A stretch of 64,000 nucleotides of DNA from Hemiscyllium ocellatum. Lineage: Eukaryota. The stretch is taken from NCBI RefSeq assembly GCF_020745735.1, contig NC_083444.1, forward strand, positions 7,694,338 to 7,758,337, read 5' to 3'. Positions 3,396 to 49,418 of the stretch are shown here, in pieces. Below the pieces are notes generated by a model. That model saw only the letters and a list, made by a program, of their open reading frames with translations, was not told where the DNA came from and did not search any database. Within the stretch, counting starts at the first letter, position 1, and each line of letters opens with the position of its first letter. The position numbers were made by a program, and so were the translations under genes.

Positions 3396-5496
3396 CTCCG
3401 GATTGGAAGTGGCACCCAGAGAGTTCCATAATTCTGATCTAATTCCGGCCACTCATTGATTCCAAACAACCAGTGGTGGAGACTGGGAAGAGGATGTGGG
3501 CTTTGTTTGGGGGGAATGAGGGGGGGGGAAAGGACTGAATCCAGTGGAGATTTCGAGAATGCAGCACATGGTGGAGGGGGAGGGGGGGCGGGGGATGAGG
3601 TCATCGTCTGGGATCTTCACCCTTCCCCCTTTTGGTCTGGAATCTCACATCTACTCCCGGAATGGGGCGAAATGAGGGCAAAAGCGGGCATAGAGTGGGT
3701 TGTGTTGCACCGTCTCGTGTCAGATGATGCCCTCCTGGACCTCTTCCGGTCTCTTCCCACTTTGGCTCAGCTCCTGAAGAAGGTGGGGGCTTTACAAGCC
3801 CACAGTTCACCGCCCAGAGGTGTCAACTATTCTGTGAATGTCCCTCCTTCCCCTCGGCAAACCCCTCACCAGAATCCAACACATCTCTTTTTCACCCCCC
3901 GATAACCCTTCCACCACCCCCTTCCCTAACCCACACCTCAGGGTCTGGCGTAGCTTGAACTCCAGCTCCCATTTTTAACTCCCTACACCCCACCCCTTTT
4001 CCACCATGTATCTGCTGCCATTGTCCTTCTAGGTGGTAGAGGTTGTGAGTTTGTGGATCTAAGGAGCCTTGGTGAATTGCTGGAGTGCATCTTATAGACA
4101 GTAGACTCTGCTGCCTACTGAGCATCAGTGGTGGAAGGAGTAGATACCTAGAGCCCTACAGATCTACAGCCCTGCAAAAGACCCTTTGGCCCATTGAGGC
4201 TGTGCCAGACAAAGCACAAACCCTGCTATTTATTTAAAATAAATCCCATTTTCCAGTACTTGGACCCACAGCATCACAAGCGCACACCCAGATTCTTCTC
4301 CAAAGTAATGAGGTTTTTTAGATTAGATTAGATTACTTACAGTGTGGAAACAGGCCCTTCGACCCAACAAGTCCACACCGACCCGCCGAAGCGCAACCCA
4401 CCCATACCCCTACATTAACCCCTTACATAACACTACGGGCAGTTTAGCATGGCCAATTCACCTGACCCGCACATCTTTGGACTGTGGGAGGAAACCGGAG
4501 CACCCGGAGGAAATCCACGCAGACACGGGGAGAATGTACAAACTCCACACAGTCAGCTTCTGGAATGTTTGTGGATGTGATGCCAATCAAGAGGGGGCTG
4601 CTTTCTCCCTGGAGGGTATCGAGCTTCTTGAGTGTTACGGGAGCTGCACCCATCCAGGGCAAGTGGGGAGTATTCCCTCACAGTCCTGACTGGTGCCTTG
4701 TCAATGGTGGGACAGACTTTGGGGAGTCAGGAGGTGAGGTGCTCCCAGAAATTTCTGACCTGCCCTTGTAGCCATTGTATTCATATGGAATCACCACATT
4801 TGTTCTCATCACTGATACACCCTAGCAGTAGGTTTAATGATGAAAATACTCGAAGATCAAAGGGAGACGGTTCGATTCTCCCTTGTTGGGACCTGGCTAC
4901 GGTAATGGTGCAAGTATCGCTTGCCATGTATCAACCCCAAACCTGAAGGTTGCCGTTAAAGTTCGGGCAATGAAGCATTCCATTTCCCTAAGCCTTGGTC
5001 CCCGTTCAGTTGGATCAAACCGATCCTGAATTTTTGGGAAGCCAAGACTGGATCCAGAATGAATGGACCTGGGGGGTGTGAGGAGGCAGGAAGGGGGATA
5101 TAATGAAGGTCATGGTGGGTGATGGGATAGGTCCCAGGTACGCCATATTCCCATAGGAAAAACCACCAATGATCCATGGCTACAGGGAAAACCAGCACAG
5201 TCCATTCTGAACCACAGCTTGATGTATCTCTCTTGTATGTTGAATGACAAATAAAGGAATGAAATGGTGTGCAAATTTACCTGCCCTCCGCCTCCCTCCT
5301 TGTGCTTTCTTGGCGATGTGCACACCTGAGTTTTGTGTGGATCCCTGCCTCCTCCACACAGAGATGTCTAGGCCATGGCACGCTGAGATAGGAGCACAAA
5401 GGCCATCTCTACATTGCTGTGTTCGGAGGGGTTCAGAGTTCTGCTGCATGTGAATTTCATGTAGGCCCAAGGTCATTGAGCAACCTGTGGCCAGCA

Positions 5497-5554
5497 ATGG
5501 ACATGAAACTCTCCAGTGTCACTGGAATCTGCCTCTAGCTGTTATTAACTCAAG
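5497..5554 (+). pseudogene. Nonsense-mutated duplicate of the receptor gene's leader exon
   Basis: ATGGACATGAAACTCTCCAGTGTCACTGGAATCTGCCTC TAG CTGTTATTAACTCAAG|gtaaag = MDMKLSSVTGICL*LLLTQ. It is colinear with 10973-11030, with a homologous acceptor (5464), donor and flanks. In-frame TAG at 5536-5538. Confidence 0.85.
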
Positions 5555-5589
5555 GTAAAGTAGAACAGGAGAAAACATCCTCCTTCCTT

Positions 5590-10972: not shown

Positions 10973-11030
10973 ATGAATATGAAGCTCTCCAGTGTGACTG
11001 GAATCATTCTCTTGCTGTTATTAATTCAAG
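10973..11030 (+). CDS. Signal-peptide exon of single-V IgSF receptor (gene 2)
   Basis: MNMKLSSVTGIILLLLLIQ(G) with phase-1 donor G|gtaaca. Upstream acceptor ttcttgcag at 10940. A perfect GTGAGT donor at 10758 may mark an upstream 5'UTR exon. Confidence 0.8.
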
Positions 11031-11063
11031 GTAACATGGAACAGGAGAAATCCTCCTCCTTCC

Positions 11064-11200
11064 NNNNNNNNNNNNNNNNNNNNNNNNNNNNNNNNNNNNN
11101 NNNNNNNNNNNNNNNNNNNNNNNNNNNNNNNNNNNNNNNNNNNNNNNNNNNNNNNNNNNNNNNNNNNNNNNNNNNNNNNNNNNNNNNNNNNNNNNNNNNN
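11064..11200. other. Assembly gap (N)
   Basis: N run. Confidence 1.
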
Positions 11201-15620: not shown

Positions 15621-15776
15621 TATGGATCACTGTGGCCACTAATCTGAAAAACTAATCTGACCCTCTGTCTCTTCCCATCCAGCTGATGTTGTATCAAACT
15701 GGCAAACTCACACTGAACTTCACATGTTCTAACTTTGCTAATTAGTCTACTTCCCTTTTTCTCTCTCTTAAAGCAG

Positions 15777-16133
15777 GAGGTCCAGTTCATGGTGGGGTCC
15801 ACCAGTCTCCCGATTTGTTGAAGGCAGAGGAAGGGGATGATGTGGCACTACATTGCCACTTTGACCCATCCAATCACCCATCACAACTGGTAGCCTTACA
15901 ATGGAATCTGCCCGAAGGTGAGGTGTATGCGATTGTGCCTGGTAACGCTAAGGGAGGCAAGACCAGCAAGAGACTGGTACTCGAGGTGGACCTGCAAGCG
16001 AGGAGCTCCTTGTTGCGCATCAGTGGTGCCATCACCAATGACAGTGGCCTCTACGTCTGCCTCGTCGAACTCCTCGAACCTCTGCCCATTATCCAGATGA
16101 AGGGGAGTGGGACCCAGCTTCATGTCATACCAG
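15777..16133 (+). CDS. Ig V-set (VJ-type) exon, CD28/CTLA-4/NKp30-like
   Basis: Pyrimidine tract plus tandem AAG/CAG acceptor; 357 nt, phase 1-1; donor G|gtacag. GGPVHGGVHQSPDLLKAEEGDDVALHCHFDPSNHPSQLVALQWNLPEGEVYAIVPGNAKGGKTSKRLVLEVDLQARSSLLRISGAITNDSGLYVCLVELLEPLPIIQMKGSGTQLHVIP. Contains the B-strand Cys, C-strand Trp, DSGLYVC and a J-like GSGTQLHV. Confidence 0.93.
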
Positions 16134-16685
16134 GTACAGGACTGTCACCCCCTTCAACTAATGCCTGCATCAGCATTTAATTGGCACTGACTTGGCAGCT
16201 TATGTGCAGTTGCAGCCTTTTGGGACTAAGCTGAGGAGAAATGTTTTGTGGTGGTGAACCTTATGAATTCTCTCCCCTACAGCCTCAATCACAAGTATGT
16301 TAAAGACAAGCGATCATTGGTTTTCTGGGCATTTGATTTGACACGTCCAAAATGTACAAAACTAATTTATCAATTCTTCTTTTAGGAGAGAAAACCTGCC
16401 AACCTTACCTATTTTGACCTATATGTGACTCCATACCGACAGCCAGTGAGGCTGGGTCTAAATTGCCTTCTGAAGTGGCCAAGCAAAACACTCAGTTCAA
16501 GTGCCATTAGGGACTGGCAACAATACTGGACTTGGCAATGGTGCCATGAAAAAAATGAAAGATTAAATAGTAGAGTAGGGGAAACGGTAGGGGGTTATTG
16601 AATTCTCACTTTCTGCCCCTATATTTAATGAACCAGGAGCTTTGTGGTCAGGTGTCCTGAATAACTCAGTGGAGATTGGGGATGA

Positions 16686-20519: not shown

Positions 20520-21480
20520 ATCTCTGGCATCATAGAATGTAGAATATGGAACATTTCAACACTCAATGTTGTGGTGACCTGTGAAACCAATCTGAAGCCC
20601 ATCTAACCAACACTAATCCATTTTCATCCATATGTCTATCCAATGACCACCTAAATGTCCTTAAAGTTAGTGGGTCTACTACTGTTTCAGGCAAGGCATT
20701 CCACACCCTTACTACTCTCTAAGTAAAGAAACTACCTCTGACATCTGCCCTATGTCTATCACTCCTCAATTTAAAGCTATGTTCCCTCATGCTATCCATT
20801 ACCATCTGAGGAAAAAGGCTCTCACTGTCAACCCTATCTAACCCTCTGATTATCTTATATGTCTCAGTTAAGTCACCTCTCAACCTTCTTCTATGTAATG
20901 GAAACAACTTCAAATCCCTTAGCCTTTCCTCATATCTTCCCTCCATACCAGGCAACATCCTAGTAAATCTCTTCTGAACCCTTTCCAAAGCTTCCACATC
21001 CTTCTTATAATACAGTGACTAGAACTGTATGTAATATTCCAAGTGCGGCCGCACCAGAGTTTTGTACAGCTGCAGCATGACCTCATGGCACTGAAACTTA
21101 ATCTCTCTACTAATAAAAGCTAACACACCATATGCCTTCCTAACAACCTTATCAACCTGGGTGGCAACTTTCAGGGATCTATATACATGGACACAGATCT
21201 CTCTGCTCACCACATACCAAGAATCTTACCAATAAACCAGTATTTTGTATTCCTGTTACTTCTTCCAAAGTGAATCGCCTCTCACTTTTCTGCACTAAAG
21301 TCCATTTGCCACCTCTCAGCCCAGCTCTGCAGCTTATCTATGTCCTTCTGTAACCTGCAACATGCAACTATCCACAACACTACTGACCTTAGTGTTTACT
21401 AACCCATCTTTCCACGCCCTCATCCAGATTATTTATAAAAGATGGCACACATCAGTAGCCCCAGAACAGATCCTTGCAGA
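20520..21480 (-). mobile_element. CR1-type LINE fragment
   Basis: ALERVQKRFTRMLPG, LYKTLVRPHLEY and LRGDLTETYKII motifs. Confidence 0.85.
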
Positions 21481-22405: not shown

Positions 22406-22654
22406 CCGGTTGTGGAAGGAATTCAAGAAAAATTAATTCTGAGGATATAAAGATATTTCTGTTGCCCCAGGAAACAGGACAAATCAAGTCAGAAAGGAAC
22501 CCAAACACATTGAAGACTTTTCCAGTAAGTTTTCTTGGCTACATTTTATGATTTGTTCTGCTCCTTTCTCTGTGTCAGCTCAGGGTGAATTAAGGGGATC
22601 TTCTGGGGATGTGAAAGGTACTCTATAAAGGCAAGTTATTTCTTCCTCTCTCAG

Positions 22655-22708
22655 GCAATGGAACAAATCCAGGAACAAACGTGTCCAAAATGATCCTCGG
22701 ATTTACTG
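22655..22708 (+). CDS. 54-nt stalk exon of gene 2
   Basis: Strong acceptor ttcttcctctctcag and donor G|gtaagt, phase 1-1. Encodes GNGTNPGTNVSKMILGFT with two N-glycosylation sequons (NGT, NVS). Confidence 0.7.
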
Positions 22709-24400: not shown

Positions 24401-24859
24401 TCTGGATCACTCTCCTCATTGTCCCTCTGATCATTTTAAATTGCAAATGTTGGGGTATCTGTGGGTGGGCAGGTTTTAACACTGGGGGTTGCTTGCAATT
24501 CACTGCAAAACCTGTCACCTCCCAGCACAGCAGGAACAGAGTCCCAGACTTTGGGGAAACTCTGTGGTCACGTCCCTGAGCCTTTGTTTTCTGCATTGCT
24601 TACAAATACTGCGGAAGCGTCAAAACACTGACTCTGCACTTTCAGCAACACTGAAAGTGAATAAGCTGCATTGGGCCACGTCATCTGCTCAGTTGCTGCA
24701 GGTTTATTTCCTGTCTGTGTGAAGTTATCTTCATTCATCAAGTTTCCAGTCCCCCAATGTCAGACCAAGCACTTGATGAGTCAGCAGCTTAATCTCAGTT
24801 AGATTTCAGTAAAACGAAAGAAACACTGCCACTTGGAGGCAGACAGAGTCTCAGTCTCA

Positions 24860-25570
24860 AGACAGACTGATGGGCAGAGAGCCAGAGAGATAGGGTGGGG
24901 AGATAGAGAGAGAGGGAATGAGAGACAGGGGGAGAAAGAGAGCGCGAGAGGATGAGACAGAGAGGGAGAGGGATGGAAAGACAAAGAGAGGGAGAGGGAT
25001 GGAAAGAGAAAGAGAGGGAGAGACACAGAAAGAGAGAGGCAGAGAGAGGGGAGTGGTAGAGAAAGAGAGGCAGATAGAGAGGGCAGGAGAAATAGACAGA
25101 GAAAGAGAGAGAGGTGGGGAGACACAGAGACTGAGAAAGGGGGATAGAGAGAGAGAGCAGGAGAAACAGAGACAGCGAAAAAGAGACAAAGGAAGACACA
25201 TAGAGACTGAGTAAGGGGTAAAGGGGGACAGAGAGAGAGCCAGAGAGAGCAACAGCAGGAGAAAAAGAGAGAGAGGGAGGGATGGAGGGAGGGGGAGACA
25301 CGGATGGAGAGACAGAGAGAGAGAGAGAGAGGGAGCAGCAGAAAGACAGAGAGACATAGACGGAAGTGAGTGAGAGATAGAAAGACAGAGAGAGGAAGAC
25401 TCAGAGACAGAGAGGAATAGATGGAGACAGAGAGCACGGGAGATAAAGCGAGGGAGAGAGAAAGGCACAGAGGGTAGCAAGAGACAGAGCGACAAAGAGA
25501 AATTGAGAGAGACAAGAGACAGACAGAAAAAGTGAGACAGAGCCTGAGAGAGAATGAGTAAAGGAGAGTG
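24860..25570. repeat. GA-rich low-complexity tract
   Basis: Purine-only strand bias; the ORFs here are artefacts. Confidence 0.9.
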
Positions 25571-25866
25571 AGATAAATGGTGAGGGGGACAAAGTTGTTG
25601 GAAGGGGCATACTCTGGGATTTGAGGAGAGGGTGGTAATGGGGATGGGGGTTAGGAATGGGAATGAGGAATGGGGGATGGCGATGAGGAATGAGAAATGG
25701 GGATGGGTTTGGGGAAGGGGAGTTGGGGATGGGGTTGATGTTTGGGATGGGTTTGGGGAGTTGGAGAAGGGGATGGGGTTGGTGGTTTGGGGAATAAAGA
25801 GTCAGGATGGGATTTGAGAACTGGGGCACATTTGAGACCACCGTGTGCACGTGTTCCCCACTGCAG

Positions 25867-26072
25867 TGAATGTGATCTCGAGACCGATGATGGAGCTCAG
25901 CTGTTTCATCTCGCTCCTCTGCCTCGTCACCCTTGCCCTGGTTGCTGGCCTTGGAGATTCCGTCTGGATGAGATGGAAATTTTCCCAGAGAAGCCAGACT
26001 TACAACATCAGGCGTCACAAAGGGAACTTGCGGGTCGCTCGGAGAGGAGTCTCCTCAGTTTCAGTCATGTAG
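25867..26072 (+). CDS. Transmembrane plus short cytoplasmic terminal exon of gene 2
   Basis: Acceptor ccccactgcag; phase-1 frame VNVISRPMMELSCFISLLCLVTLALVAGLGDSVWMRWKFSQRSQTYNIRRHKGNLRVARRGVSSVSVM*. A hydrophobic segment is followed by a basic cluster. The four-exon CDS totals 675 nt (224 aa plus stop). Confidence 0.7.
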
Positions 26073-26467
26073 CGCACAAGTCAGACCCGGGCCCACTCCC
26101 CAGGCAAAGAGACCACTGTATTGGTATCAGTCCTCAAACTCTCCTCCCTCCACTCCCCAACCCCCCACTCCCTCCTCTCAACTTTCTCACCCCTCTCCCC
26201 ACTTCTCCTCATTCCCTGCTCTCCCTCCTCTCCCCACTCTTCAATTACCTACATTCACCTCAAGCTCTCTCACCCTCCTCTTCATCCTTCCCCTCTCTCT
26301 CCTCTTCACTCTGCCTCACCCTCACCCTCTCCCCCTTCCCTCACTCCCCTCTTCTGTTCCCTGACCCTCATTCACCTCTACCCCACACCTCTCACTGACC
26401 CTCACCCCTTCATTTCCTCCCTTTTCCTTTCAGCCCCACACACGTGGACACACACATACTCATATAC

Positions 26468-27378
26468 NNNNNNNNNNNNNNNNNNNNNNNNNNNNNNNNN
26501 NNNNNNNNNNNNNNNNNNNNNNNNNNNNNNNNNNNNNNNNNNNNNNNNNNNNNNNNNNNNNNNNNNNNNNNNNNNNNNNNNNNNNNNNNNNNNNNNNNNN
26601 NNNNNNNNNNNNNNNNNNNNNNNNNNNNNNNNNNNNNNNNNNNNNNNNNNNNNNNNNNNNNNNNNNNNNNNNNNNNNNNNNNNNNNNNNNNNNNNNNNNN
26701 NNNNNNNNNNNNNNNNNNNNNNNNNNNNNNNNNNNNNNNNNNNNNNNNNNNNNNNNNNNNNNNNNNNNNNNNNNNNNNNNNNNNNNNNNNNNNNNNNNNN
26801 NNNNNNNNNNNNNNNNNNNNNNNNNNNNNNNNNNNNNNNNNNNNNNNNNNNNNNNNNNNNNNNNNNNNNNNNNNNNNNNNNNNNNNNNNNNNNNNNNNNN
26901 NNNNNNNNNNNNNNNNNNNNNNNNNNNNNNNNNNNNNNNNNNNNNNNNNNNNNNNNNNNNNNNNNNNNNNNNNNNNNNNNNNNNNNNNNNNNNNNNNNNN
27001 NNNNNNNNNNNNNNNNNNNNNNNNNNNNNNNNNNNNNNNNNNNNNNNNNNNNNNNNNNNNNNNNNNNNNNNNNNNNNNNNNNNNNNNNNNNNNNNNNNNN
27101 NNNNNNNNNNNNNNNNNNNNNNNNNNNNNNNNNNNNNNNNNNNNNNNNNNNNNNNNNNNNNNNNNNNNNNNNNNNNNNNNNNNNNNNNNNNNNNNNNNNN
27201 NNNNNNNNNNNNNNNNNNNNNNNNNNNNNNNNNNNNNNNNNNNNNNNNNNNNNNNNNNNNNNNNNNNNNNNNNNNNNNNNNNNNNNNNNNNNNNNNNNNN
27301 NNNNNNNNNNNNNNNNNNNNNNNNNNNNNNNNNNNNNNNNNNNNNNNNNNNNNNNNNNNNNNNNNNNNNNNNNNNNNN
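26468..27378. other. Assembly gap (N) just 3' of the gene 2 terminal exon
   Basis: N run; could hide extra exons or 3'UTR. Confidence 1.
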
Positions 27379-28529: not shown

Positions 28530-29490
28530 CAGCCAAGAGGTACAGTTAGTAAGTTTGCAGATGATACCAAAATTGGAGGTGTAGTGGACAGCGAAGAGGG
28601 TTTTCTCAGATTACAACAGGATCTGGACCAGATGGGCCAGTGAACTGAGAAGTGGCAGATGGAGTTTGATTCAGATAAATGCAAGGTGCTGCATTTAGGG
28701 AAAGCAAATCTTAGCAGGACTTATACACTTAATGGTAAGGTCCTAGGGAGTGTTGCTGAACAAAGAGACCTTGGAGTGCAGGTTCATAGCTCCTTGAAAG
28801 TGGAGTTGCAGGTACATAGGATAGTGAAGAAGGCATTCGGTATGCTTTCCTTTATTGGTCAGAGCATTGAGGACAGGAGTTGGGAGGTCATGTTGCGGCT
28901 GTGCAGGACATTGGTTAGGACACTGTTGGAATATTGTATGCAATTCTTGTCTCTTCCTATTGGAAAGATGTTGTGAAACTTAAAAGGGTTCAAAAACGAT
29001 TTACAAGGATGTTGCCAGGGTTGGAGGATTTGAGCTATAGGGAGAGGCTGAACAGGCTGGGGCTGTTTTCCCTGGAGCATCGGAGACTGAGGGGTGAACT
29101 TGTAGAGGCTTAGAAAATTATGGGGGGCATGGATAGGATAAATAGACAAAGTCTTTTCCCTGGGATCGGGGAGTCCAGGACTAGAGGGCATAGGGTTAGG
29201 GTGAGAGGGGAAAGATATAAAAGAGACCTATGGGGCAACATTTTCATGCAGAGGATGGCATGGGTATGGAATGAGCTGCCAGACAAAGTGGTGGAGGCTG
29301 GTACAATTGCAACATTTAAGAGGCATTTGGATGGGTATATGAATAGGAAGGGTTTGGAGGGATGTGGGCCGGGCGCTGGCAGGTGGGACTAGATTGGGTT
29401 GGGATATCTGGTCGGCATGGATGAGTTGGACCGAAGGGTCTGTTTCCCTGCTGTACATCTCTATGACTCTATGACTCTATGACTCTATGA
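28530..29490 (+). mobile_element. CR1-type LINE 3' fragment with tandem (CTATGACT)n tail
   Basis: KFADDTKIGG-type RT motif, EQRDLGVQVH and WVWNELP; tail repeats at ~29459-29490. Confidence 0.88.
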
Positions 29491-33461: not shown

Positions 33462-34995
33462 TTCGTCAGTTTGCAGATGTCACCAAAATTGGTGGTCTAG
33501 TGGAGAGTGAGGAAGGTTACCTCTGACTACAATGGGACCTTGATCTGACGGGCTGAGGAATGGCAGATAGATTTTAATGTAGATAAATGTGAGGTGCTGC
33601 ATTTTAGTAATAAAAACCAGGGCAGGACTTATACACTTAATATTAGGGTCCTGGGGAGTGTTGCTGAACAAAGAGACCTTGGAGTGCAGGTTCATAGCTC
33701 CTTGAAGGTGGAGTCACAGGTAAACAGGATAGTGAAGGAGGTATTTGATATGCTTGCCTTTATTGGTCAGTGCATTGAGTACAGGAGTTGGGAGGTCAAG
33801 TTACATCTCTACAGGATATTGGTTAGGCCACTTGCATTCAATTCTGGTCTCCTTGCTATAGGAAAGATGTTGTTAAGCTTGAGAGGGTGGAGAAAAGATT
33901 TACAAGGATGTTGCCGGTACTGGAGGGTTTGAGCCACAGGGAGATGCTGAATAGACGGGGGTTATTTTCCCTGTGGCATCGGAGGCCGAGGGATGACTTT
34001 ATAGAGGTTTATGAAATCATGAGGGGCATGGATAGGGCAAATAGTCAAGGTCTTTTTCCACAGGGTTGGGGAGTCAAACATTAGAGGGCATAGGTTTAGG
34101 GTGAGAGGGGAAAGATTTGAAAGGGACCTAAGGGGTAACTTTTTCACACAGAGGGTGGTTCATGTATGGAGCAAATTGCCAGAGGAAGTGGCTGGTACAA
34201 TTACAACAATCAAAAGGCATCTGGATGGGTACATGAATAGGAAGGGTTGAGAGGGATAAGGGCTAAAAGCTGTTTGGACTCAGACCAGACCCCCTCAAAC
34301 ATTCAAAGAAGTAGCTCAGACCCAAACTTTGCGAGTTGTTTTAAGCAGGTGTAAACAGGGAGTGATGCAGCTGGTCAAACCACTCAGTTTTAAACAAAAC
34401 AGCATTTATTTCCAAGATTACCGAATGAAGCACAAGCGAAAGAGAACAGAGTACAGAAAAACTTAACCTATCCGAAAACCCAGCAGATTATACCAACTTA
34501 AGGATGCAGCTCCCAATATGTGCAACAATCCCCAAAAATACCCCTTGGCACAAAAGATAAAGTCAAACATAAGAATTTACAGGAGAGAGAGAGTTAGCTG
34601 AAAAAACACCTCTTCCATGTAGCAATTCCATGTAGCCTCGAACTGCCTGACTGATTTCAGTGAATAGCCAACTTGCCAAAACCAAATCAAACCAGAGAAA
34701 AACTGAGCTGGGAGAAATTGCCACTCCCCTTTCATTGTACAAGTGTTCTTTCTCAATGTAAAAGCTTTGTGCCTGAGGCAGTATCCGTTAGCTATAATCA
34801 GATTGGCCCTAAAACCCATACTTTTCTCCAAACATGTCTTAACAACCTCCTGAAAAATAAACTAAGAACAACAGAATCTTGTTAGAGGAGCAGCATCGTC
34901 ACAAACAGGGCTTGTTTAGTTTGGGATATCTGGTCAGCAAGGCCAAGTTGGGCTGAAGGGGTCTGTTTCTGTGCAGTATGGCTCTATGACTCTGT
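33462..34995 (+). mobile_element. CR1 fragment interrupted near its 3' end by a 633-bp insert
   Basis: CR1 RT motifs at 33462-34270; tail resumes at 34904-34995. Confidence 0.8.
34271..34903 (-). mobile_element. Probable solo LTR nested in CR1
   Basis: TG...CA termini (tgtttgg...cgtcaca), non-CR1 internal sequence, AATAAA on the minus strand. No clean target-site duplication seen. Confidence 0.45.
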
Positions 34996-37269
34996 CTCTA
35001 TTTCTGGGAAACTGAAAAAGTGTGTGTGTGTGACAGAAAAAGAGAAAGGGAAGGAGGGAAAGAGAAAGACAGAAGAAAGGTTGAATTGCATGATATTACA
35101 TGCTCAGAGAAGAGCTGGTAAGACAGAGTGAGGAGGGGAGGAGTGGGGCGGCAAATTATTGATTACCCTCACTTCTGAAAATCTGGGAATCTCACCACTG
35201 ACTGAGGAAGAATGCCCGGATTCATAAGTGAAAGCAAAGAAACGCAGCATTGATGTCATAACATCAGAAAATGTCTGCTTCCTTCTGAAAACTTATTGGG
35301 CAAGAGAGTCACAGGACACTGGTGTGACTGTGGCTTTACTTCACACGCTTTGGATGATTAAGCATCATGTTACAACTGAGGTTTCCATGAACTGCTTTTC
35401 CAGTCCATCATAAACCCCCGAGTGCCACTGGGGCACTCCCTGGAACGTCAAAGGAGGGAGTCCTGCTTTCAACTTGTAACCCTCTGAGTCAGAATGTCAA
35501 TGGGTTCAAGTCCCACCCAAAGATTTCAGTCAAAACACACAGCTGCCAATGTTGTTTCAAAACAGAGGCTTTTCATTTATAGTATGAAGTCCATCCTTCC
35601 CCACTGTTATTAGACCTACGAACAGACCTCTTATATATTATTTTCTGCACCTTCTCTGCGGCTGTAACCCTATATTCTGCATTCTGTTCGATTACCCTGA
35701 CGTACTTATGTAAGGTATGATGTGTCTGGATAGCTCGCAAAATAAGCTTGTACAACAATAAATAAAATCAATTTAAAAATGCACAGTTTATGTCCCAATT
35801 TATGCACAGCAGGTTCCCCTAATCTAGTCAATTTTGGATTGAGGGATGAACATAAAACATACAAGCAAGAACAGACCACCTTGAGCCTGCTCCACCATTC
35901 AATAAAATCATGGCTGATCTTTTTCATGAACTCACTTTTTCACGAACATACTTTGTCATGAAGTAAGTTTGCAGATGACACCAAAATTGGAGGTGTAGTG
36001 GACAGCGAAGAGGGTTACCTCAGACTACAGGTGGCACAGTGGCTCAGTGGTTAGCACTGCTGCCTCACAGTACCATGGACCCAGGTTCGGTTCCTGCCTT
36101 GGGTGACTGTCTGTGTGGAGTTTGCACATTCTCCCTGTGTCTGTGTGGGTTTGCTCTGGTTTCCTCCCACAATTCAAAGATGTGCAGATCAGGTAAATTG
36201 GCCATGCAAAATTGCCCCCTAATGGTAAACTGACCATTAGTCAGGGGTAAATATGGGGTAGGGGAATGCGTCTGGATGGGTTGCTCTTCAGAGTTGTTTA
36301 GCTGTAGGCCTGTTTCCATACTGTAGGGAATCTAATTGGGTTGGGGTTTCTGGTTGGCATGGACAAGTTGGACCGAAGGGTCTGTTTCCGTGCTGTACAT
36401 CTCTGTGACTCAATAACTCAGCTCCACTTACCCGCCCACTCACCATGACCCTTACTTCCTTTCCTGTTCAAAAGTCTGTCTTTGCCTTAAAAGCATTCAA
36501 CGAGGCAACCTCAACTGCTTTCCTGGGCAGGGAATTCCACGGATTCACAACTCTTTGGGGGAAGACGTTCCTCCTCAACTCAGCCCCAAATCTGCTCCCC
36601 TTCATTCTGAGGCTGTGCCCCCTCATTCTAGTTTCACCCACCAGTGGAAACAAACTTCCTGCTTCTGTCTTATGTATCTCGTTCGTCATTTTATATGTTT
36701 CCACAAGATCCTTCCTCATTCTTCTAAATTCCAATGAGTATAGTCCCAGTCTGCTCAATCTCTCCTCGTTACCAATCCTCTCAACTCTGGAATCAACCTC
36801 GTGAACCTCCTCTGCACCCCCTCCAGTGCCAGTACATCCACTGCTTAAGGACACTGGAAAGGACACATTTGCTGTTCATGTCAGCGCAGCCAGTCAAGTG
36901 GATTAGATGAAGTCTCATCTCGGGAAACAGCATAGTCAACAGTGAGTGTGGTATTGTAAGGAGTCAGCCTGTTTTATCTGTTCAGCTCTTTGGAGTGGGG
37001 CTTCAATGCTTCGGCTTTCATCCCAGGAGCTGGAAAGACACCCATCCATTCACAAGCACAGCCCCTCAATAGTTCAAACTCATTCAGAGTCTGGCCTGCC
37101 CAACTCCAATAGATGGGCAAGGTCATATGGCATGTGTTTCAAGATCAGACGAGTTCTTCCTGTGAACCGTAGGCTAGAATTTTAAAACAGCAAGGCGCCT
37201 CCTGACTCCTGAATACTGAAGGGAGTAACTCACCTCCTGACTCCCCGAACCCAGCAATAACTCACCTCC

Positions 37270-38171: not shown

Positions 38172-39210
38172 TCTTTTTCGGAATGGCAGCCGGTGACAAG
38201 CGGTGTCCCGCAGGGTTCAGTGTTGGGGCCGCAGCTGTTCACATTATATATTAATGATCTGGATGAAGGGACTGGGGGCATTCTAGCGAAGTTTGCCGAT
38301 GATACAAAGTTAGGTGGACAGGCAGGTAGTACTGAGGAAGTGGGGAGGCTGCAGAAGGATCTAGACAGTTTGGGAGAATAGTCCAGGAAATGGCTGATGG
38401 AATTCAACGTGAACAAATGCGAGGTCTTGCACTTTGAAAAAAAGAATAAAAGCATAGACTACTTTCTAAACAGTGAGAAAATTCATAAAGCCAAAGTACA
38501 AAGGGATCTGGGAGTACTAGTCGAGGATTCTCTAAAGGTAAACATGCAGGTTGAGTCCGTGATTAAGAAAGCAAATGCAATGTTGTCATTTATCTCAAGA
38601 GGGTTGAAATATAAAAGCACCCTTGTGCTACTGAGACTTTATAAAGCTCTGGTTAGGCCCCATTTGGAGTACTGTGTCCAGTTTTGGTCCCCACACCTCA
38701 GGAAGGATATACTGGCACTGGAACGTGTCCAGCGGAGAATCACACGGATGATCCCTGGAATGGTAGGTCTAACATATGAGGAACGGCTGAGGATCCTGGA
38801 ATTGTATTCATTGGAGTTTAGAAGATTAAGGGGAGACTTATTAGAAACTTACAAGATAATACATGGCTTGGAAAGGGTGGACGCTAGGGAATTTTTTCCG
38901 TTATGCGAGGAGACTAGGACCCGTGGACACAGCCTTAAAATTAGAGGGGGTCAATTCAGAACAGAAATGCGGAGACATTTCTTCAGCCAGAGGGTGGTGG
39001 GCCTGTGGAATTAATTGCCGCAGAGTGCAGCGGAGGCCGGGACGCTAAATGTCTTCAAGGCAGAGATTGATAGATTCTTGATGTCTCGAGGAATTAAGGG
39101 CTACGGGGAAAATGCGGATAAGTGGAGCTGAAATGTCCATCAGCCAAGATTGAATGGCGGAGTGGACTCGATGGGCCGAATGGCCTTACTTCCACTCCTA
39201 TGTCTTATGG
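38172..39210 (+). mobile_element. CR1-type LINE 3' fragment, second subfamily, relatively intact
   Basis: [21 protein letters not shown] and KFADDTK RT motifs; 205-aa ORF 38397-39014. Confidence 0.92.
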
Positions 39211-40885: not shown

Positions 40886-41419
40886 AGAATATCCAGCATT
40901 TACAGCTTTTTACAAAGAGAAATGCCTTTTTGCAGCTCTAATCTCTCAAAGTGCCGTTATGATTCCCTGCACCTCCAGCAGCACAGCCTCCCAATGCCAG
41001 CAGTTTTCACCATGGTGTTCCGGAGTCAGAATTGGGAGCATCTCCTCTCATTACAAACACAGCCCCCTCCCCCCTCACTTCCTGATACACAGCGGCTGGA
41101 CAGTGAGACACAAAAGATTTACATCTGCCACAACAGAGCTGCGTCCAAAAGTGATGAGAGAGACACAGTCAGAGAGATCTGATTGTTGTTTAGAAATGGG
41201 GAAGGATCATAAATGCAAAAATGTGATCAAACAATTCGAGTATTTGCGTGAGTGCGTGATCGTGTATGTCAGGGTGTGAATCTATGTGGAGTAAGTGAGG
41301 TCTGCAGATGCTGGAGATCAGAGCTGAAAATGTGTTGCTGGAAAAGCGCAGCAGGTCAGGCAGCATCCAATGAACAGGAAATTCAACGTTTCGGGCATAA
41401 GCCATTCATCAGCCATTCA

Positions 41420-41872
41420 TCTATGTGTCCGTCTGAGTGTGTGTATGAATATGTGCATGAGTGTGTGTGTGAATGCGTGATTGTATATGTCTGGGTGTGA
41501 ATCTATGTGTTGGTGTGAATGTGTGTATAAATATGTGTATGAGTGTGTGTGTGTGTATGAATATGTGCATGAGTGTGTGTGTGTGTGTGTGTGTGTGAGT
41601 GTGTGATTGTGTGTGTCTGGGTGTGAATCTATGTGTCCGTGTGAGTGTGTGTATGAATATGTGCATGAGTGTGTGTGCGTGCGTGTGTGTGTGTGTGTGT
41701 GTGATTGTGTATGTCTGGGTGTGAATCTATGTGTCTGTGTGAGTGTGTGTATGAATATGTGCTTGAGTGTGTGTGTGTATGTGTGTGTGTGTCCGTGTGT
41801 GTGAGTGCGTGATAGTGTATGCCTGGGTGTGAATCTATGTGTCTGTGTGAGCGTGTGTATGAATATGTGCAT

Positions 41873-41914
<42 letters not shown>

Positions 41915-41915
41915 A

Positions 41916-41949
<34 letters not shown>

Positions 41950-42012
41950 ATTGTGTATGTCTGGGTGTGAATCTATGTGTCCGTGTGAGTGTGTGTATGA
42001 ATATGTGCATGA

Positions 42013-42043
<31 letters not shown>

Positions 42044-43255
42044 ATTGTGTATGTCTGCATGTGAATCTATGTATGAATATGTGCATGAGTGTGTCTGTGT
42101 TTGTGTGTGTGTGAAAGTGTATGCCTTGGTGTGAATCTATGTGTCCGTGTGAGTGTGTGTATGAATATGTGCATGAGTGTGCGTGTGTGTGTGTGTGCGC
42201 GTGATTGCGTATGTCTGGGTGTGAATCTATGTGTCTGTGTGAGTGTGTGTATGAATATGTGCATGAGTGTGTGTGTGTGTGTGTATGTGTGATTGTGTAT
42301 GTCTGGGTGTGAATCTATGTGTCCGTGTGAGTGTGAAAGTGTATGTGTGCACATGGGTGTATGAATATGTGCATGAGTGTGTGTGTGTATGTGTGTGTGT
42401 GTGTGTGTGTGTGCGTGATTGTGTATGTCTGCGTGTGAATCTATGTATGAATATGTGCATGAGAGTGTGTGTGTGTGTGTGTGTGTGAAAGTGTATGTCT
42501 TGGTGTGAATCTATGTGTCCGTGTGAATGTGTGTATGAATATGTGCATGAGTGTGTGTGTGTGTGAAGGTGTATGTCTGGGTGTGAATATATGTGTCCGT
42601 GTGAGTGTGTGTATGAATATGTGCATGAGTGTGTGTGTGTGTGTGTGTCTGAGTGTGTATGTGTGAATGTGTGTGTGTGTGTGATTGTGTATGTCTGGGT
42701 ATGAATCTATGTGTCCATGCGAGTGTGTGTATGAATATGTGCATGAGTGTGCGTGTGAGTGTGTGTATGAATATGTGCATGAGTGTGTGTGAGTGTGTGT
42801 GAGTATTTGTGTGTATGTGTGAGCATGCGTGTGTGAGTGTGTGCATGCATGTGTGTGAGAGTATGTGTGTGAAAGTGTATGTGTGCACATGGGTGTGACA
42901 ATGTGTGTGCATACATATAAGTGTGTTTGTGTGAGAGAGTGCGTGAATGTGTGTGTGTGTGAGTCTGTGTGTGTGTCAATGTGCATGTGTGTGTGTTCAT
43001 GCATGTGTGTGAGAGAGTGTGTGTTTGAATATGTGTGTGTTTGTATGTGTGAGTGTGTGTGAGAATGTGTTTGTGTGAGTGTGTGACAATGTGTGTGTGA
43101 GCATGTGTGTTGGTATGTGTGTGTGTGCGCACGCATGTGTGAGTTTGAGTGTGTGCATGCGTGCATGTGTGTGAGTGAGTGTGTGCGTGTGTGAGTGCGT
43201 GCATGCATGTGTATGAGTGTGTGTGTTTGCATGTGTGTGAGTGTGTGTGTGTGTG
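41420..43255. repeat. GT-rich higher-order tandem repeat
   Basis: Recurrent gtatgaatatgtgcatgagt-(GT)n-gattgtgtatgtctgggtgtgaatctatgtgtccgtgtgagt units that decay to plain (GT)n at the right end. Confidence 0.9.
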
Positions 43256-43679
43256 CAGTTCATGTGGTTACGCAGCTCAGAAAGCAACTCCAATTTATCT
43301 CTGCTCAATGGAAATTATCAGCACTGTTTGCAAAAGGGGCATTTCAACTTCTTTCCTAATCAGTTTCACAAACAAGAAACACTCAGAGTTTAGATTAGAG
43401 TGGCGCTGAAAAAGCACAACAGGTCAGGCAGCATCCGAGGAATAGGCCTGAGCATAAACATCCCATCCCATCCAGCATCCTCACCCTCCCCCACTGATCT
43501 ATGTCCAGGGAGAAACACTCATTGACCCCATTTTCAGGACATTCTGAAGCAGTTACACCAGTATCCCGGGATACTGGGGGCTATCAAATAACATAGCAAC
43601 ATATTTCCCGGTCCAGCCCAACTGATAGACTCAGCAGGCTATTTAAACATAGGCTCAGTAACATTGGAGGATATTACAT

Positions 43680-48169: not shown

Positions 48170-48720
48170 TGTGCAAGTGGACAGCTTTACTCTGTATCTG
48201 GCCCTGTGCTGTCCCTGTTCCTGGGAGTGTTTGATAGGAGTCAATGTAGAGAGAGCTTTACTCTGTATCTGTCACCGTGCTGTCCCTGTTCTGGGAAGTG
48301 TTTGATGGGGGACAGTGTAGAGGGAGCTTTACTCTGTATCTAACCCCGTGCTGTCCCTGTCCTGGGAGTGTTTGATCAGGGACAGTGTAGAAGGAGCTTT
48401 ACTCTGTATCTAACCCCGTGCTGTCCCTGTCCTGGGAGAGTTTGATGGGGAACAGTGTAGAGGGAGCTTTACTCTGTATCTAACCCCGTGCTGTCCCTGT
48501 CCTGGGAGAGTCTGATGGGGGACAGTGTAGAGGGAGTTTTTCTCTGTATCTAACCCTGTACTGTCCCTGTTCCTGGGAGTGTTTGATGGGAGTCAATGTA
48601 GAGGGAGCTTTACTCTGTGTCTGTCACCGTGCTGTCCTGTCCTGGGGAGTGTTTGATCAGGGACAGTGTAGAGGGAGCTTTACTCTGTATCTAACCTCCT
48701 GCTGTCCCTGTCCTGGGAGT
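48170..48720 (+). repeat. ~66-bp minisatellite, same family as 12600-13510
   Basis: About eight tandem units between the leader and V exons of gene 3. Confidence 0.9.
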
Positions 48721-49058: not shown

Positions 49059-49418
49059 AGGCCATACAATGTGAAAAAAATGTAAAGCCCGTGACAGCTA
49101 TGCAGGGAAGCACGGTTTATTTGCCATGTTCCTTTAGGTCCGAGGCACAGCCTGATAAGCTGTTGGTGTCCTGGCAAAAGGCACATCGGGACTACCCCTT
49201 GATCGTGCATGCAGAGAGGCGAGGGGGTGAGATGCAGGGACAGCAGGACAACAGCTTTAAAGGCCGCACGGCTCTCCCTCCTTACTGGTATCAAACGGGG
49301 AGCGCGACTCTGCAGCTCCAAGGGCTGAGGAGCACCGATTCTGGGAACTATACCTGTTACGTGAGAGCAGAGCAACGTTCCACCATCTGTGCCTCGCTGC
49401 GGCTCACTGTGAACTCAG
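49059..49418 (+). CDS. Ig V-set exon, B7 family/butyrophilin type (B7-H4/HHLA2/BTN-like)
   Basis: Acceptor ccctttcctttgcag; 360 nt, phase 1-1; donor G|gtaagc. EAIQCEKNVKPVTAMQGSTVYLPCSFRSEAQPDKLLVSWQKAHRDYPLIVHAERRGGEMQGQQDNSFKGRTALPPYWYQTGSATLQLQGLRSTDSGNYTCYVRAEQRSTICASLRLTVNS. The VH...Q..F.GRT.L and A.L.L......D.G.YTCYV patterns are typical of B7/BTN V domains. Confidence 0.93.

Follow-up and report, generated by a model that had tools for sequence, protein, structure and literature searches.

A CTLA-4-like F-G loop on the single V domain of an unnamed gene of cartilaginous fishes with a B7-H3-like neighbour

The exon at positions 15777-16133 of the window (the whole stretch of DNA analysed, 64,000 nucleotides from the epaulette shark, Hemiscyllium ocellatum) is a real V-set head exon of an annotated gene, which confirms what a sequence-only reading of this DNA had observed. 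The gene, LOC132835256, is already annotated, is unnamed, and is apparently undescribed in the literature that we found. We consider it probable, at roughly 0.6, that the gene stands for a separate and so far unnamed lineage of single-V receptors of the CD28/CTLA-4-like type, for which loop-mediated binding of a B7-family protein is likely. Sharks, rays and chimaeras have retained this lineage as one orthologous gene. Its link to the CD28 family is weak outside the F-G region, and the first two thirds of the domain are closer to the V domain of TCR alpha than to any CD28-family member.

The head exon and the gene that carries it

The exon is the second of five in RefSeq LOC132835256, an "uncharacterized" gene of Hemiscyllium ocellatum. 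It is flanked by an AG at 15775-15776 and a GT at 16134-16135 and is in phase 1 at both ends. Translation of 15779-16132 on the forward strand gives a domain of 118 amino acids, and the peptide quoted in the sequence-only reading is indeed present in its C-terminal part, at the end of the translation. The domain matches the Pfam V-set profile above the curated cut-off (E 3.6e-10). The other four exons were located by tblastn with the Stegostoma protein XP_048380297 (74% identical), which was the top match of a whole-library phmmer search. All five exons lie on the same strand with canonical splice sites and, when exon 2 is taken from 15774, their spliced product agrees letter for letter with RefSeq isoform X1 of LOC132835256 (P0085, 243 amino acids). 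The features of the gene are as follows.

10973-11030, forward strand: exon 1, with the start codon and a hydrophobic leader; its 3' end is in phase 1, before a GT donor at 11031 (tblastn, spliced model)
15777-16133, forward strand: exon 2, a complete VJ-type V-set Ig domain, phase 1-1 (AlphaFold2, Pfam, splice sites)
16073-16090, forward strand: codons of L99-E-P-L-P-I104, the tip of the F-G hairpin and CDR3 equivalent (alignment, CTLA-4 register, interface model)
16100-16126, forward strand: J-like G strand K-G-S-G-T-Q-L-H-V, in the same exon as the V and germline-joined
22471-22524, forward strand: exon 3, 54 nt in phase 1-1, encoding the first stalk repeat of 18 amino acids, which bears the sequon N-R-T (tblastn, spliced model)
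22655-22708, forward strand: exon 4, 54 nt in phase 1-1, encoding the second stalk repeat of 18 amino acids, which bears the sequons N-G-T and N-V-S (tblastn, spliced model)
25867-26072, forward strand: exon 5, with a membrane-proximal Cys, the transmembrane helix, a basic tail of 38 amino acids and the stop codon at 26070-26072 (tblastn, spliced model)

The two possible starts of exon 2 correspond to a tandem NAGNAG acceptor at 15772-15776 (aaAGcAG). RefSeq isoform X1 takes the upstream AG, which adds one Ala and places the exon start at 15774, and the start at 15777 given in the sequence-only reading is that of the downstream AG.

The predicted layout of the protein is a leader, a VJ-type IgV domain, a stalk of repeats, a transmembrane helix and a short basic tail, with three N-glycosylation sequons in the stalk and one Cys at the outer membrane boundary. 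The product is predicted to be an intact type I membrane protein of 242-243 amino acids with exon 2 as its ligand-binding head. None of the tyrosine motifs is conserved in the tails of the orthologues, and the single Tyr in the tail of the epaulette shark is His or absent in its closest relatives. The hydrophobic membrane span holds no Arg or Lys, and an Asp at its end is confined to orectolobiform sharks. The product would probably act as a counter-receptor or adhesion-type partner, or else signal via an associated chain and not by itself. The number of stalk repeats ranges from two in the epaulette shark to about five in Scyliorhinus canicula and varies by species and isoform (P0086, P0075, P0007, P0082, P0084). 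Because RefSeq isoforms differ by exactly one stalk repeat, exon duplication and exon skipping are suggested to tune the length of the stalk.

V and J form one uninterrupted exon in five species (epaulette shark, Stegostoma, Scyliorhinus, Amblyraja and Callorhinchus), and neither a CACAGTG nor a CACTGTG heptamer occurs within the exon at 15777-16133. The description of the domain as a germline-joined VJ domain, with a V-set and a J-like strand in one exon lacking a heptamer, is therefore borne out, and the same two observations speak against a rearranging antigen-receptor V gene. In the alignment of 11 domains, G109, T112 and L114 of the J-like strand are invariant, and the strand can be aligned to J segments of TCR alpha and also to G-x-G-T-Q in CTLA-4. 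The sequence-only reading had proposed a structure prediction of the F-G loop; the AlphaFold2 model, built on 11 orthologues (mean pLDDT 89.2), has the full set of V-domain strands and a long F-G hairpin with P-L-P-I at its tip.

It is hardly credible that the exon is a chance open frame or part of a dead gene copy. There is, 5.4 kb upstream, a degenerate leader-exon copy that contains an in-frame stop, but the gene itself has an intact frame over five canonically spliced exons, a dN/dS of 0.33 for the V exon in comparison with Stegostoma, orthologues throughout the class and a RefSeq model. The degenerate copy, at 5440-5587 on the forward strand, resembles the 5' end and leader exon of the receptor gene (84% identity over 148 nt), carries its stop in the leader, and has no second V exon downstream of it in the window. 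In a sequencing run that is probably RNA from the same organism, 0.70 of the sampled words of 15700-16200 were present, 0.69 being expected if only the exon were covered, and 0.53 of the words of 25700-26300; the DNA runs gave 0.93-1.0. This word content fits a spliced transcript, short of proof, and gives a hint of expression.

The remainder of the window holds fragments of reverse-transcriptase-type retroelement open reading frames at 20719-20997 (reverse strand), 28659-29392, 33594-33932, 36468-36866 (reverse strand) and 38397-39014, which have motifs in common and are found again in the skate and zebra-shark loci. Runs of N occupy 2529-2674, 11064-11200 and 26468-27378, and long low-complexity tracts at 24800-26400 and 41400-43300 yield spurious long open reading frames.

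Conservation of the domain and likeness of its loop to CTLA-4

Ten further species of chondrichthyans have full-length orthologues (Stegostoma, Rhincodon, Heterodontus, Cetorhinus, two Scyliorhinus species, Narcine, Hypanus, Amblyraja and Callorhinchus), and every one of them is named "uncharacterized". The sequence-only reading had allowed that the domain might simply belong to the annotated one-to-one orthologue of a known shark gene. That alternative is half borne out: annotated one-to-one orthologues do exist in other sharks, but all of them are called uncharacterized. The orthologue V domains form one clade (98/99 support) whose inner branching matches the species tree, in a phylogeny that included no NKp30, CD28 or CTLA-4 references and that leaves the branching between groups unsettled. 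One supported clade that tracks the species tree indicates a single old gene. A profile of the family separates its members, which score at least 150 bits, from all other V domains, which score at most 76 bits.

Relatives with more than one V domain, or more than one such gene, were also observed. In Hypanus P0002 (three V domains) and Amblyraja P0006 (two), the LEPLPI domain is kept at the N-terminal tip, and the lower V domains belong to a different chondrichthyan clade with a similar loop, a clade also found in the multi-V proteins P0012, P0013 and P0022. The Narcine orthologue (P0007) has a single V domain. In Rhincodon (P0054, P0083) and Heterodontus (P0003, P0009), a second V protein of the PLPI-type group lies seemingly on the same contig as the orthologue, and the loop of the second Rhincodon protein reads P-I-P-I. 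These observations hint at a chromosomal cluster of PLPI-type V genes in the whale shark and the horn shark.

Conservation within the V domain is concentrated at the hairpin tip. Residues L99, P101, L102, P103 and I104 do not vary among the 11 chondrichthyan domains, and residue 100 is Glu in 10 of the 11 and Lys in the basking shark, Cetorhinus. The conservation score is 1.0 for P-L-P-I (101-104) compared with 0.49 for the BC loop, the least conserved part of the domain. The C-strand motif W42-x-L44-P45 is also invariant across the family. An invariant L-x-P-L-P-I core is what would be expected of a binding motif. CTLA-4, CD28 and PD-1 bind B7-family ligands through the GFCC' face, and the invariant proline-braced tip, together with the invariant C-strand motif, marks the GFCC' face of the shark domain as a putative binding surface.

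We searched a fragment of 43 amino acids covering strands E, F and G against all PDB sequences and obtained 68 matches at E <= 10. The top 18 are all CTLA-4 (E 1.2e-5 to 4.5e-5), with the displayed alignments ungapped over 39 residues and with 20 of the 39 identical to chain 4kkn, and CD28 appears only at E 0.3-0.5. In these alignments P101 and P103 fall on the first and third Pro of MYPPPY, so that P-L-P lies on P-P-P, and the G-x-G-T-Q that follows is in register. At the level of sequence, the CTLA-4 likeness of the E-F-G region is beyond chance. The claim that the domain has a CTLA-4-like F-G loop with the ligand motif replaced therefore holds: the signature Y-x-C-x6-P-x-P-x5-G-x-G has the canonical CTLA-4 spacing, and LEPLPI stands in place of MYPPPY. 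The replacement may confer an altered ligand specificity, as that reading had proposed.

The full-length domain gives a different picture from its E-F-G part. Over its whole length it is matched best in the PDB by V-J chains of TCR alpha (about 37 bits, E 2.8e-8); the search with the family profile gave the same result. The V domain of TCR delta is the top structural match (Z 15.7, rmsd 2.2 Å over 108 residues), in a ranking in which all V domains tie (Z 14-15.7; Foldseek E about 1e-8), so that fold searches do not discriminate among the V domains of TCR, antibodies, CTLA-4, CD28 and TMIGD2. In Foldseek against Swiss-Prot models, TCR alpha, CTLA-4, CD28 and TMIGD2 are jointly top-ranked, and the neighbours in a protein language model are clusters named 'CTLA-4-like' and 'CD28'. 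The domain is a mosaic: strands A to E are TCR-alpha-like, the F-G hairpin is CTLA-4-like, and the J motif is almost complete.

Several properties that distinguish the CD28 family were compared with those of LOC132835256. The V domain agrees (Pfam V-set, one V exon in a five-exon gene, an AlphaFold2 V-domain model), and so does the loop, which has a Pro motif at the canonical position followed by G-x-G, with the exact MYPPPY and E-I-P both absent. Chondrichthyan CD28/CTLA4-related genes are reported to carry P-[P/L]-P, then G-x-G (PMC11599192). The conserved tyrosine-based tail motif of the family is missing from these tails, which are short and basic. None of 12 members of the LOC132835256 family matches Pfam V-set_2 (PF15910, the CD28/ICOS type) at E <= 10, a profile that a lungfish CD28-like protein does match. 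The lungfish protein aligns with the family over 41 E-F-G residues only and scores 25 bits with the family profile; a search seeded by it returned nothing but itself. A further profile search was swamped by word-sharing candidates and added no named protein.

The CD28-family members of jawed vertebrates have been catalogued as nine, in a study that included the epaulette-shark assembly (Quiniou et al. 2024, PMC11599192). This shark has a CD28/CTLA4-related cluster of three genes with P-P-P loops (XP_060684085, XP_060684151 and XP_060684086) as well as CD28H, CD28HL1, CD28HL2, CD28X and PD-1 (PMC11599192). The LEPLPI loop occurs in none of the listed epaulette-shark members, nor anywhere in the supplements (PMC11599192). 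Because all catalogued members have other loops and LEPLPI is not among them, LOC132835256 is not a CD28/CTLA-4 orthologue and is absent from the catalogue. It is accordingly very improbable that we are dealing with the shark's own CD28, CTLA-4 or ICOS with a drifted motif. Such an orthologue would explain why CTLA-4 is the best, ungapped match of the F-G region and would agree with the P-[P/L]-P and G-x-G pattern reported for chondrichthyan relatives (PMC11599192), but the shark already has the P-P-P cluster and the other members, and the missing V-set_2 match (0 of 12), the tail without a conserved tyrosine motif and the five exons with stalk repeats all speak against it. Of the sequence-only assignment to the CD28/NKp30 family, the CD28-like V domain and loop stand, and V-set_2, the tail motif, membership in the catalogue and the NKp30 component do not.

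The B7-H3-like neighbour and its modelled pairing

Following the receptor gene on the same strand, 22 kb downstream, is a V-only gene that resembles B7-H3.

49059-49418, forward strand: V exon of the B7-H3-like neighbour, a separate gene and candidate partner (PDB match, complex model, skate synteny)

The best PDB match of the neighbour's V domain is CD276/B7-H3 (E 3.3e-19), followed by MOG, B7-H4 and butyrophilins. In the skate Amblyraja, the receptor orthologue is accompanied on its own strand by an orthologous B7-like V exon 7.7 kb downstream (39% identity, E 5e-15). In Stegostoma the receptor orthologue is followed, 9.5 kb downstream, by a called V-set gene, and the intergenic DNA is collinear with the window as far as the flank extends. 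Within 10 kb downstream of the orthologue, no B7-like V exon was found in Callorhinchus or Scyliorhinus canicula. When genes upstream of the skate and catshark orthologues were sought in the window, only retroelement repeats matched. The B7-H3-like V domain has an extra pair of cysteines, the first close to the N-terminus and the second in the G strand, kept in both the shark exon (49059-49418) and the skate exon (L003, 24257-24589). Tandem repeat units of about 70 nt occupy 48180-48720, in intron 1 of the B7-like gene, and similar arrays occur in the Stegostoma and Callorhinchus loci.

We modelled the receptor V domain in complex with that of the neighbour. The pair scores 0.63, compared with 0.01 for the best control, the controls being unrelated proteins and not Ig V domains, so that the pass may reflect remembered CTLA-4/B7 or PD-1/PD-L1 complexes. 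A score of 0.63 is attained by 51 of 78 solved complexes and by 2 of 108 mismatched pairs, and in a blind test of the method 7 of 44 neighbouring gene pairs passed. Three runs share at least 91% of contacts, with a partner pLDDT of at least 87. On the receptor, the modelled contacts are E97, L99, P101-Q106, residues 31-33 of the BC loop, residues 37 and 39 of the C strand and residue 52 of the C' strand. Among alignable contact residues of the partner, 3 of 13 are identical between shark and skate, compared with 38 of 97 elsewhere in the domain. Such poorly conserved contacts on the partner fit badly with an invariant loop on the receptor.

We propose that a rigid, proline-containing F-G tip (L-E-P-L-P-I) is presented on the GFCC' face in the manner of CTLA-4 and would bind the front sheet of a B7-family V domain, for which the likeliest partner would be the B7-H3-like V-only protein encoded downstream. 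Binding of a B7-type V domain through the loop, as a general mechanism, is the likelier part of this proposal and we regard it as probable; that the B7-H3-like neighbour is the specific binding partner, as the complex model suggests, is possible at somewhat less than even odds. The shark-skate split dates to roughly 300 million years ago. That receptor and downstream neighbour are an ancient, co-inherited binding pair that has been adjacent since before this split is a tentative suggestion, and on balance a doubtful one.

The same model could be read in another way, in which the VJ domain and the neighbouring V domain pair side by side on one cell as an Fv-like heterodimer, making the gene a non-rearranging relative of antigen receptors. 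This reading draws on the TCR matches (TCR alpha V-J as the best full-length PDB match, TCR delta V as the best structural match) and the nearly complete J motif, on a modelled interface that joins two front sheets, as in both Fv and PD-1/PD-L1, and on a receptor tail without an evident signalling motif. However, the fold does not discriminate, with Z 14-15.7 for all V domains, the PDB contains a great excess of TCR chains, no J motif is present in the B7-like V domain, and the complex model cannot tell pairing on one cell from pairing between two. We consider the Fv-like heterodimer quite unlikely and retain the receptor with a B7-family ligand as the preferred reading.

Relation to NKp30 and other known receptors

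The sequence-only reading had also likened the domain to NKp30, and this part of it fails: neither the domain, the family profile, the fragment nor the fold searches yielded NKp30. It is absent from the best 60 PDB matches of the shark domain and of the family profile, from the 68 PDB matches of the E-F-G fragment (E <= 10) and from the top 30 Swiss-Prot fold matches. In mammalian NKp30 a basic residue in the membrane span pairs with signalling adaptors. The likeness thus fails on sequence, on fold ranking and on the lack of such a residue in the shark membrane span. No MHC marker was found in the 64-kb window.

The nearest relatives beyond the core clade are chondrichthyan multi-V proteins and amphibian proteins of roughly 200 amino acids. 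For the PLPI protein of Xenopus, the best solved structure of a non-rearranging protein is NKp30 (full-length alignment, E 1.4e-4). An alternative is that the gene belongs to the NKp30 (NCR3) family, perhaps as one of the strongly diverged NCR3 subtypes reported from the nurse shark, with the B7-like neighbour in the place of B7-H6. Such a placement would suit the one VJ domain that does not rearrange, the short, motif-free tail and the B7-family gene next to it. It would also suit the amphibian proteins, which share the P-L-P-I loop, come next after the chondrichthyan PLPI-type V domains and include the Xenopus protein that matches NKp30. NCR3 is moreover seen as an old VJ gene co-evolving with B7-H6 (PMC12227049). 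But NKp30 is missing from the PDB and fold matches listed, the membrane span has no basic residue, and the neighbour resembles B7-H3, MOG and B7-H4, B7-H6 not being among its 60 listed PDB matches; a homologue search that returned no nurse-shark protein adds weak evidence in the same direction. We hold membership in the NKp30 family to be rather unlikely. The family sits between the CD28 and NKp30 groups of joined-VJ receptors described in the literature, with a binding loop that follows the CTLA-4 plan. UrIg and UrIg2 were considered as well and rejected, these being V-C1-C2-C3 proteins and LOC132835256 having no C domain.

The 2024 catalogue of the jawed-vertebrate CD28 and B7 families omits this lineage, despite its CTLA-4 loop architecture and its maintenance by selection across cartilaginous fishes. 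The invariant, hydrophobic, proline-braced loop points to one conserved partner, and the presence of a B7-H3-like gene next door in sharks and skates makes a receptor-ligand hypothesis open to direct testing. To our knowledge, the receptor for ligands of the B7-H3 lineage is still unsettled in mammals. If the co-inherited pair were real, the gene would represent a tenth CD28-like lineage and would provide a concrete candidate for the type of receptor that B7-H3-lineage ligands use. The mosaic domain is also a data point on how non-rearranging VJ domains relate to antigen receptors, without implying the status of an ancestor; any bearing on antigen-receptor origins would come only from its TCR-alpha-like front half and good J motif.

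Compared with TCR alpha V-J chains, the shark domain shares the motifs of strands A to E, the J-like G strand and the fold (Z about 15), but it is germline-joined, with no heptamer in the exon and no constant domain, and its CDR3-equivalent loop is invariant where that of TCR is diverse. With NKp30 it has in common the non-rearranging VJ single-V architecture, a short tail and a ligand of the B7 family (putative in the shark), but there is no detectable NKp30 match in the domain and no arginine in the membrane span. In the unnamed 'PLPI' V proteins of amphibians and chondrichthyans, such as Xenopus LOC121401187, P-L-P-I is followed by G-x-G with the same spacing, and the tails are very short. 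The family profile gives these proteins 50-76 bits; in the tree they lie apart from the core clade, which is well supported, and they do not have the W-x-L-P motif of the C strand.

CD28H (TMIGD2) and CD28HL2, a paralogue of CD28H, resemble the shark gene in having a Pro at C+7 in the CDR3-like loop (PMC11599192), and since CD28HL2 allows E-I-P-[P/A/L/V]-[P/F/L], P-L-P occurs there too (PMC11599192). In the fold search, human TMIGD2 ranks near the top (TM 0.79, rmsd 2.7 Å). However, the shark loop has L-E-P where E-I-P is defining, the Y-x-N-x tail motif is absent, and the epaulette-shark CD28H and CD28HL2 entries have other loops (PMC11599192).

The differences from CTLA-4 and CD28 are that the first two thirds of the shark domain are not CTLA-4-like, that LEPLPI replaces MYPPPY, that V-set_2, the YxxM/YxN tail motif and the conserved YxxxxT of the membrane span are missing, and that the gene has extra stalk-repeat exons and lies apart from the shark's own CD28/CTLA4 cluster. 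With CTLA-4, CD28 and the chondrichthyan cluster it nevertheless shares a single IgV ectodomain, the spacing of the F-G signature and a place in the fold ranking. As in CTLA-4 and CD28, the partner in our complex model is a B7-family V domain, which would be contacted by the F-G loop and the GFCC' face.
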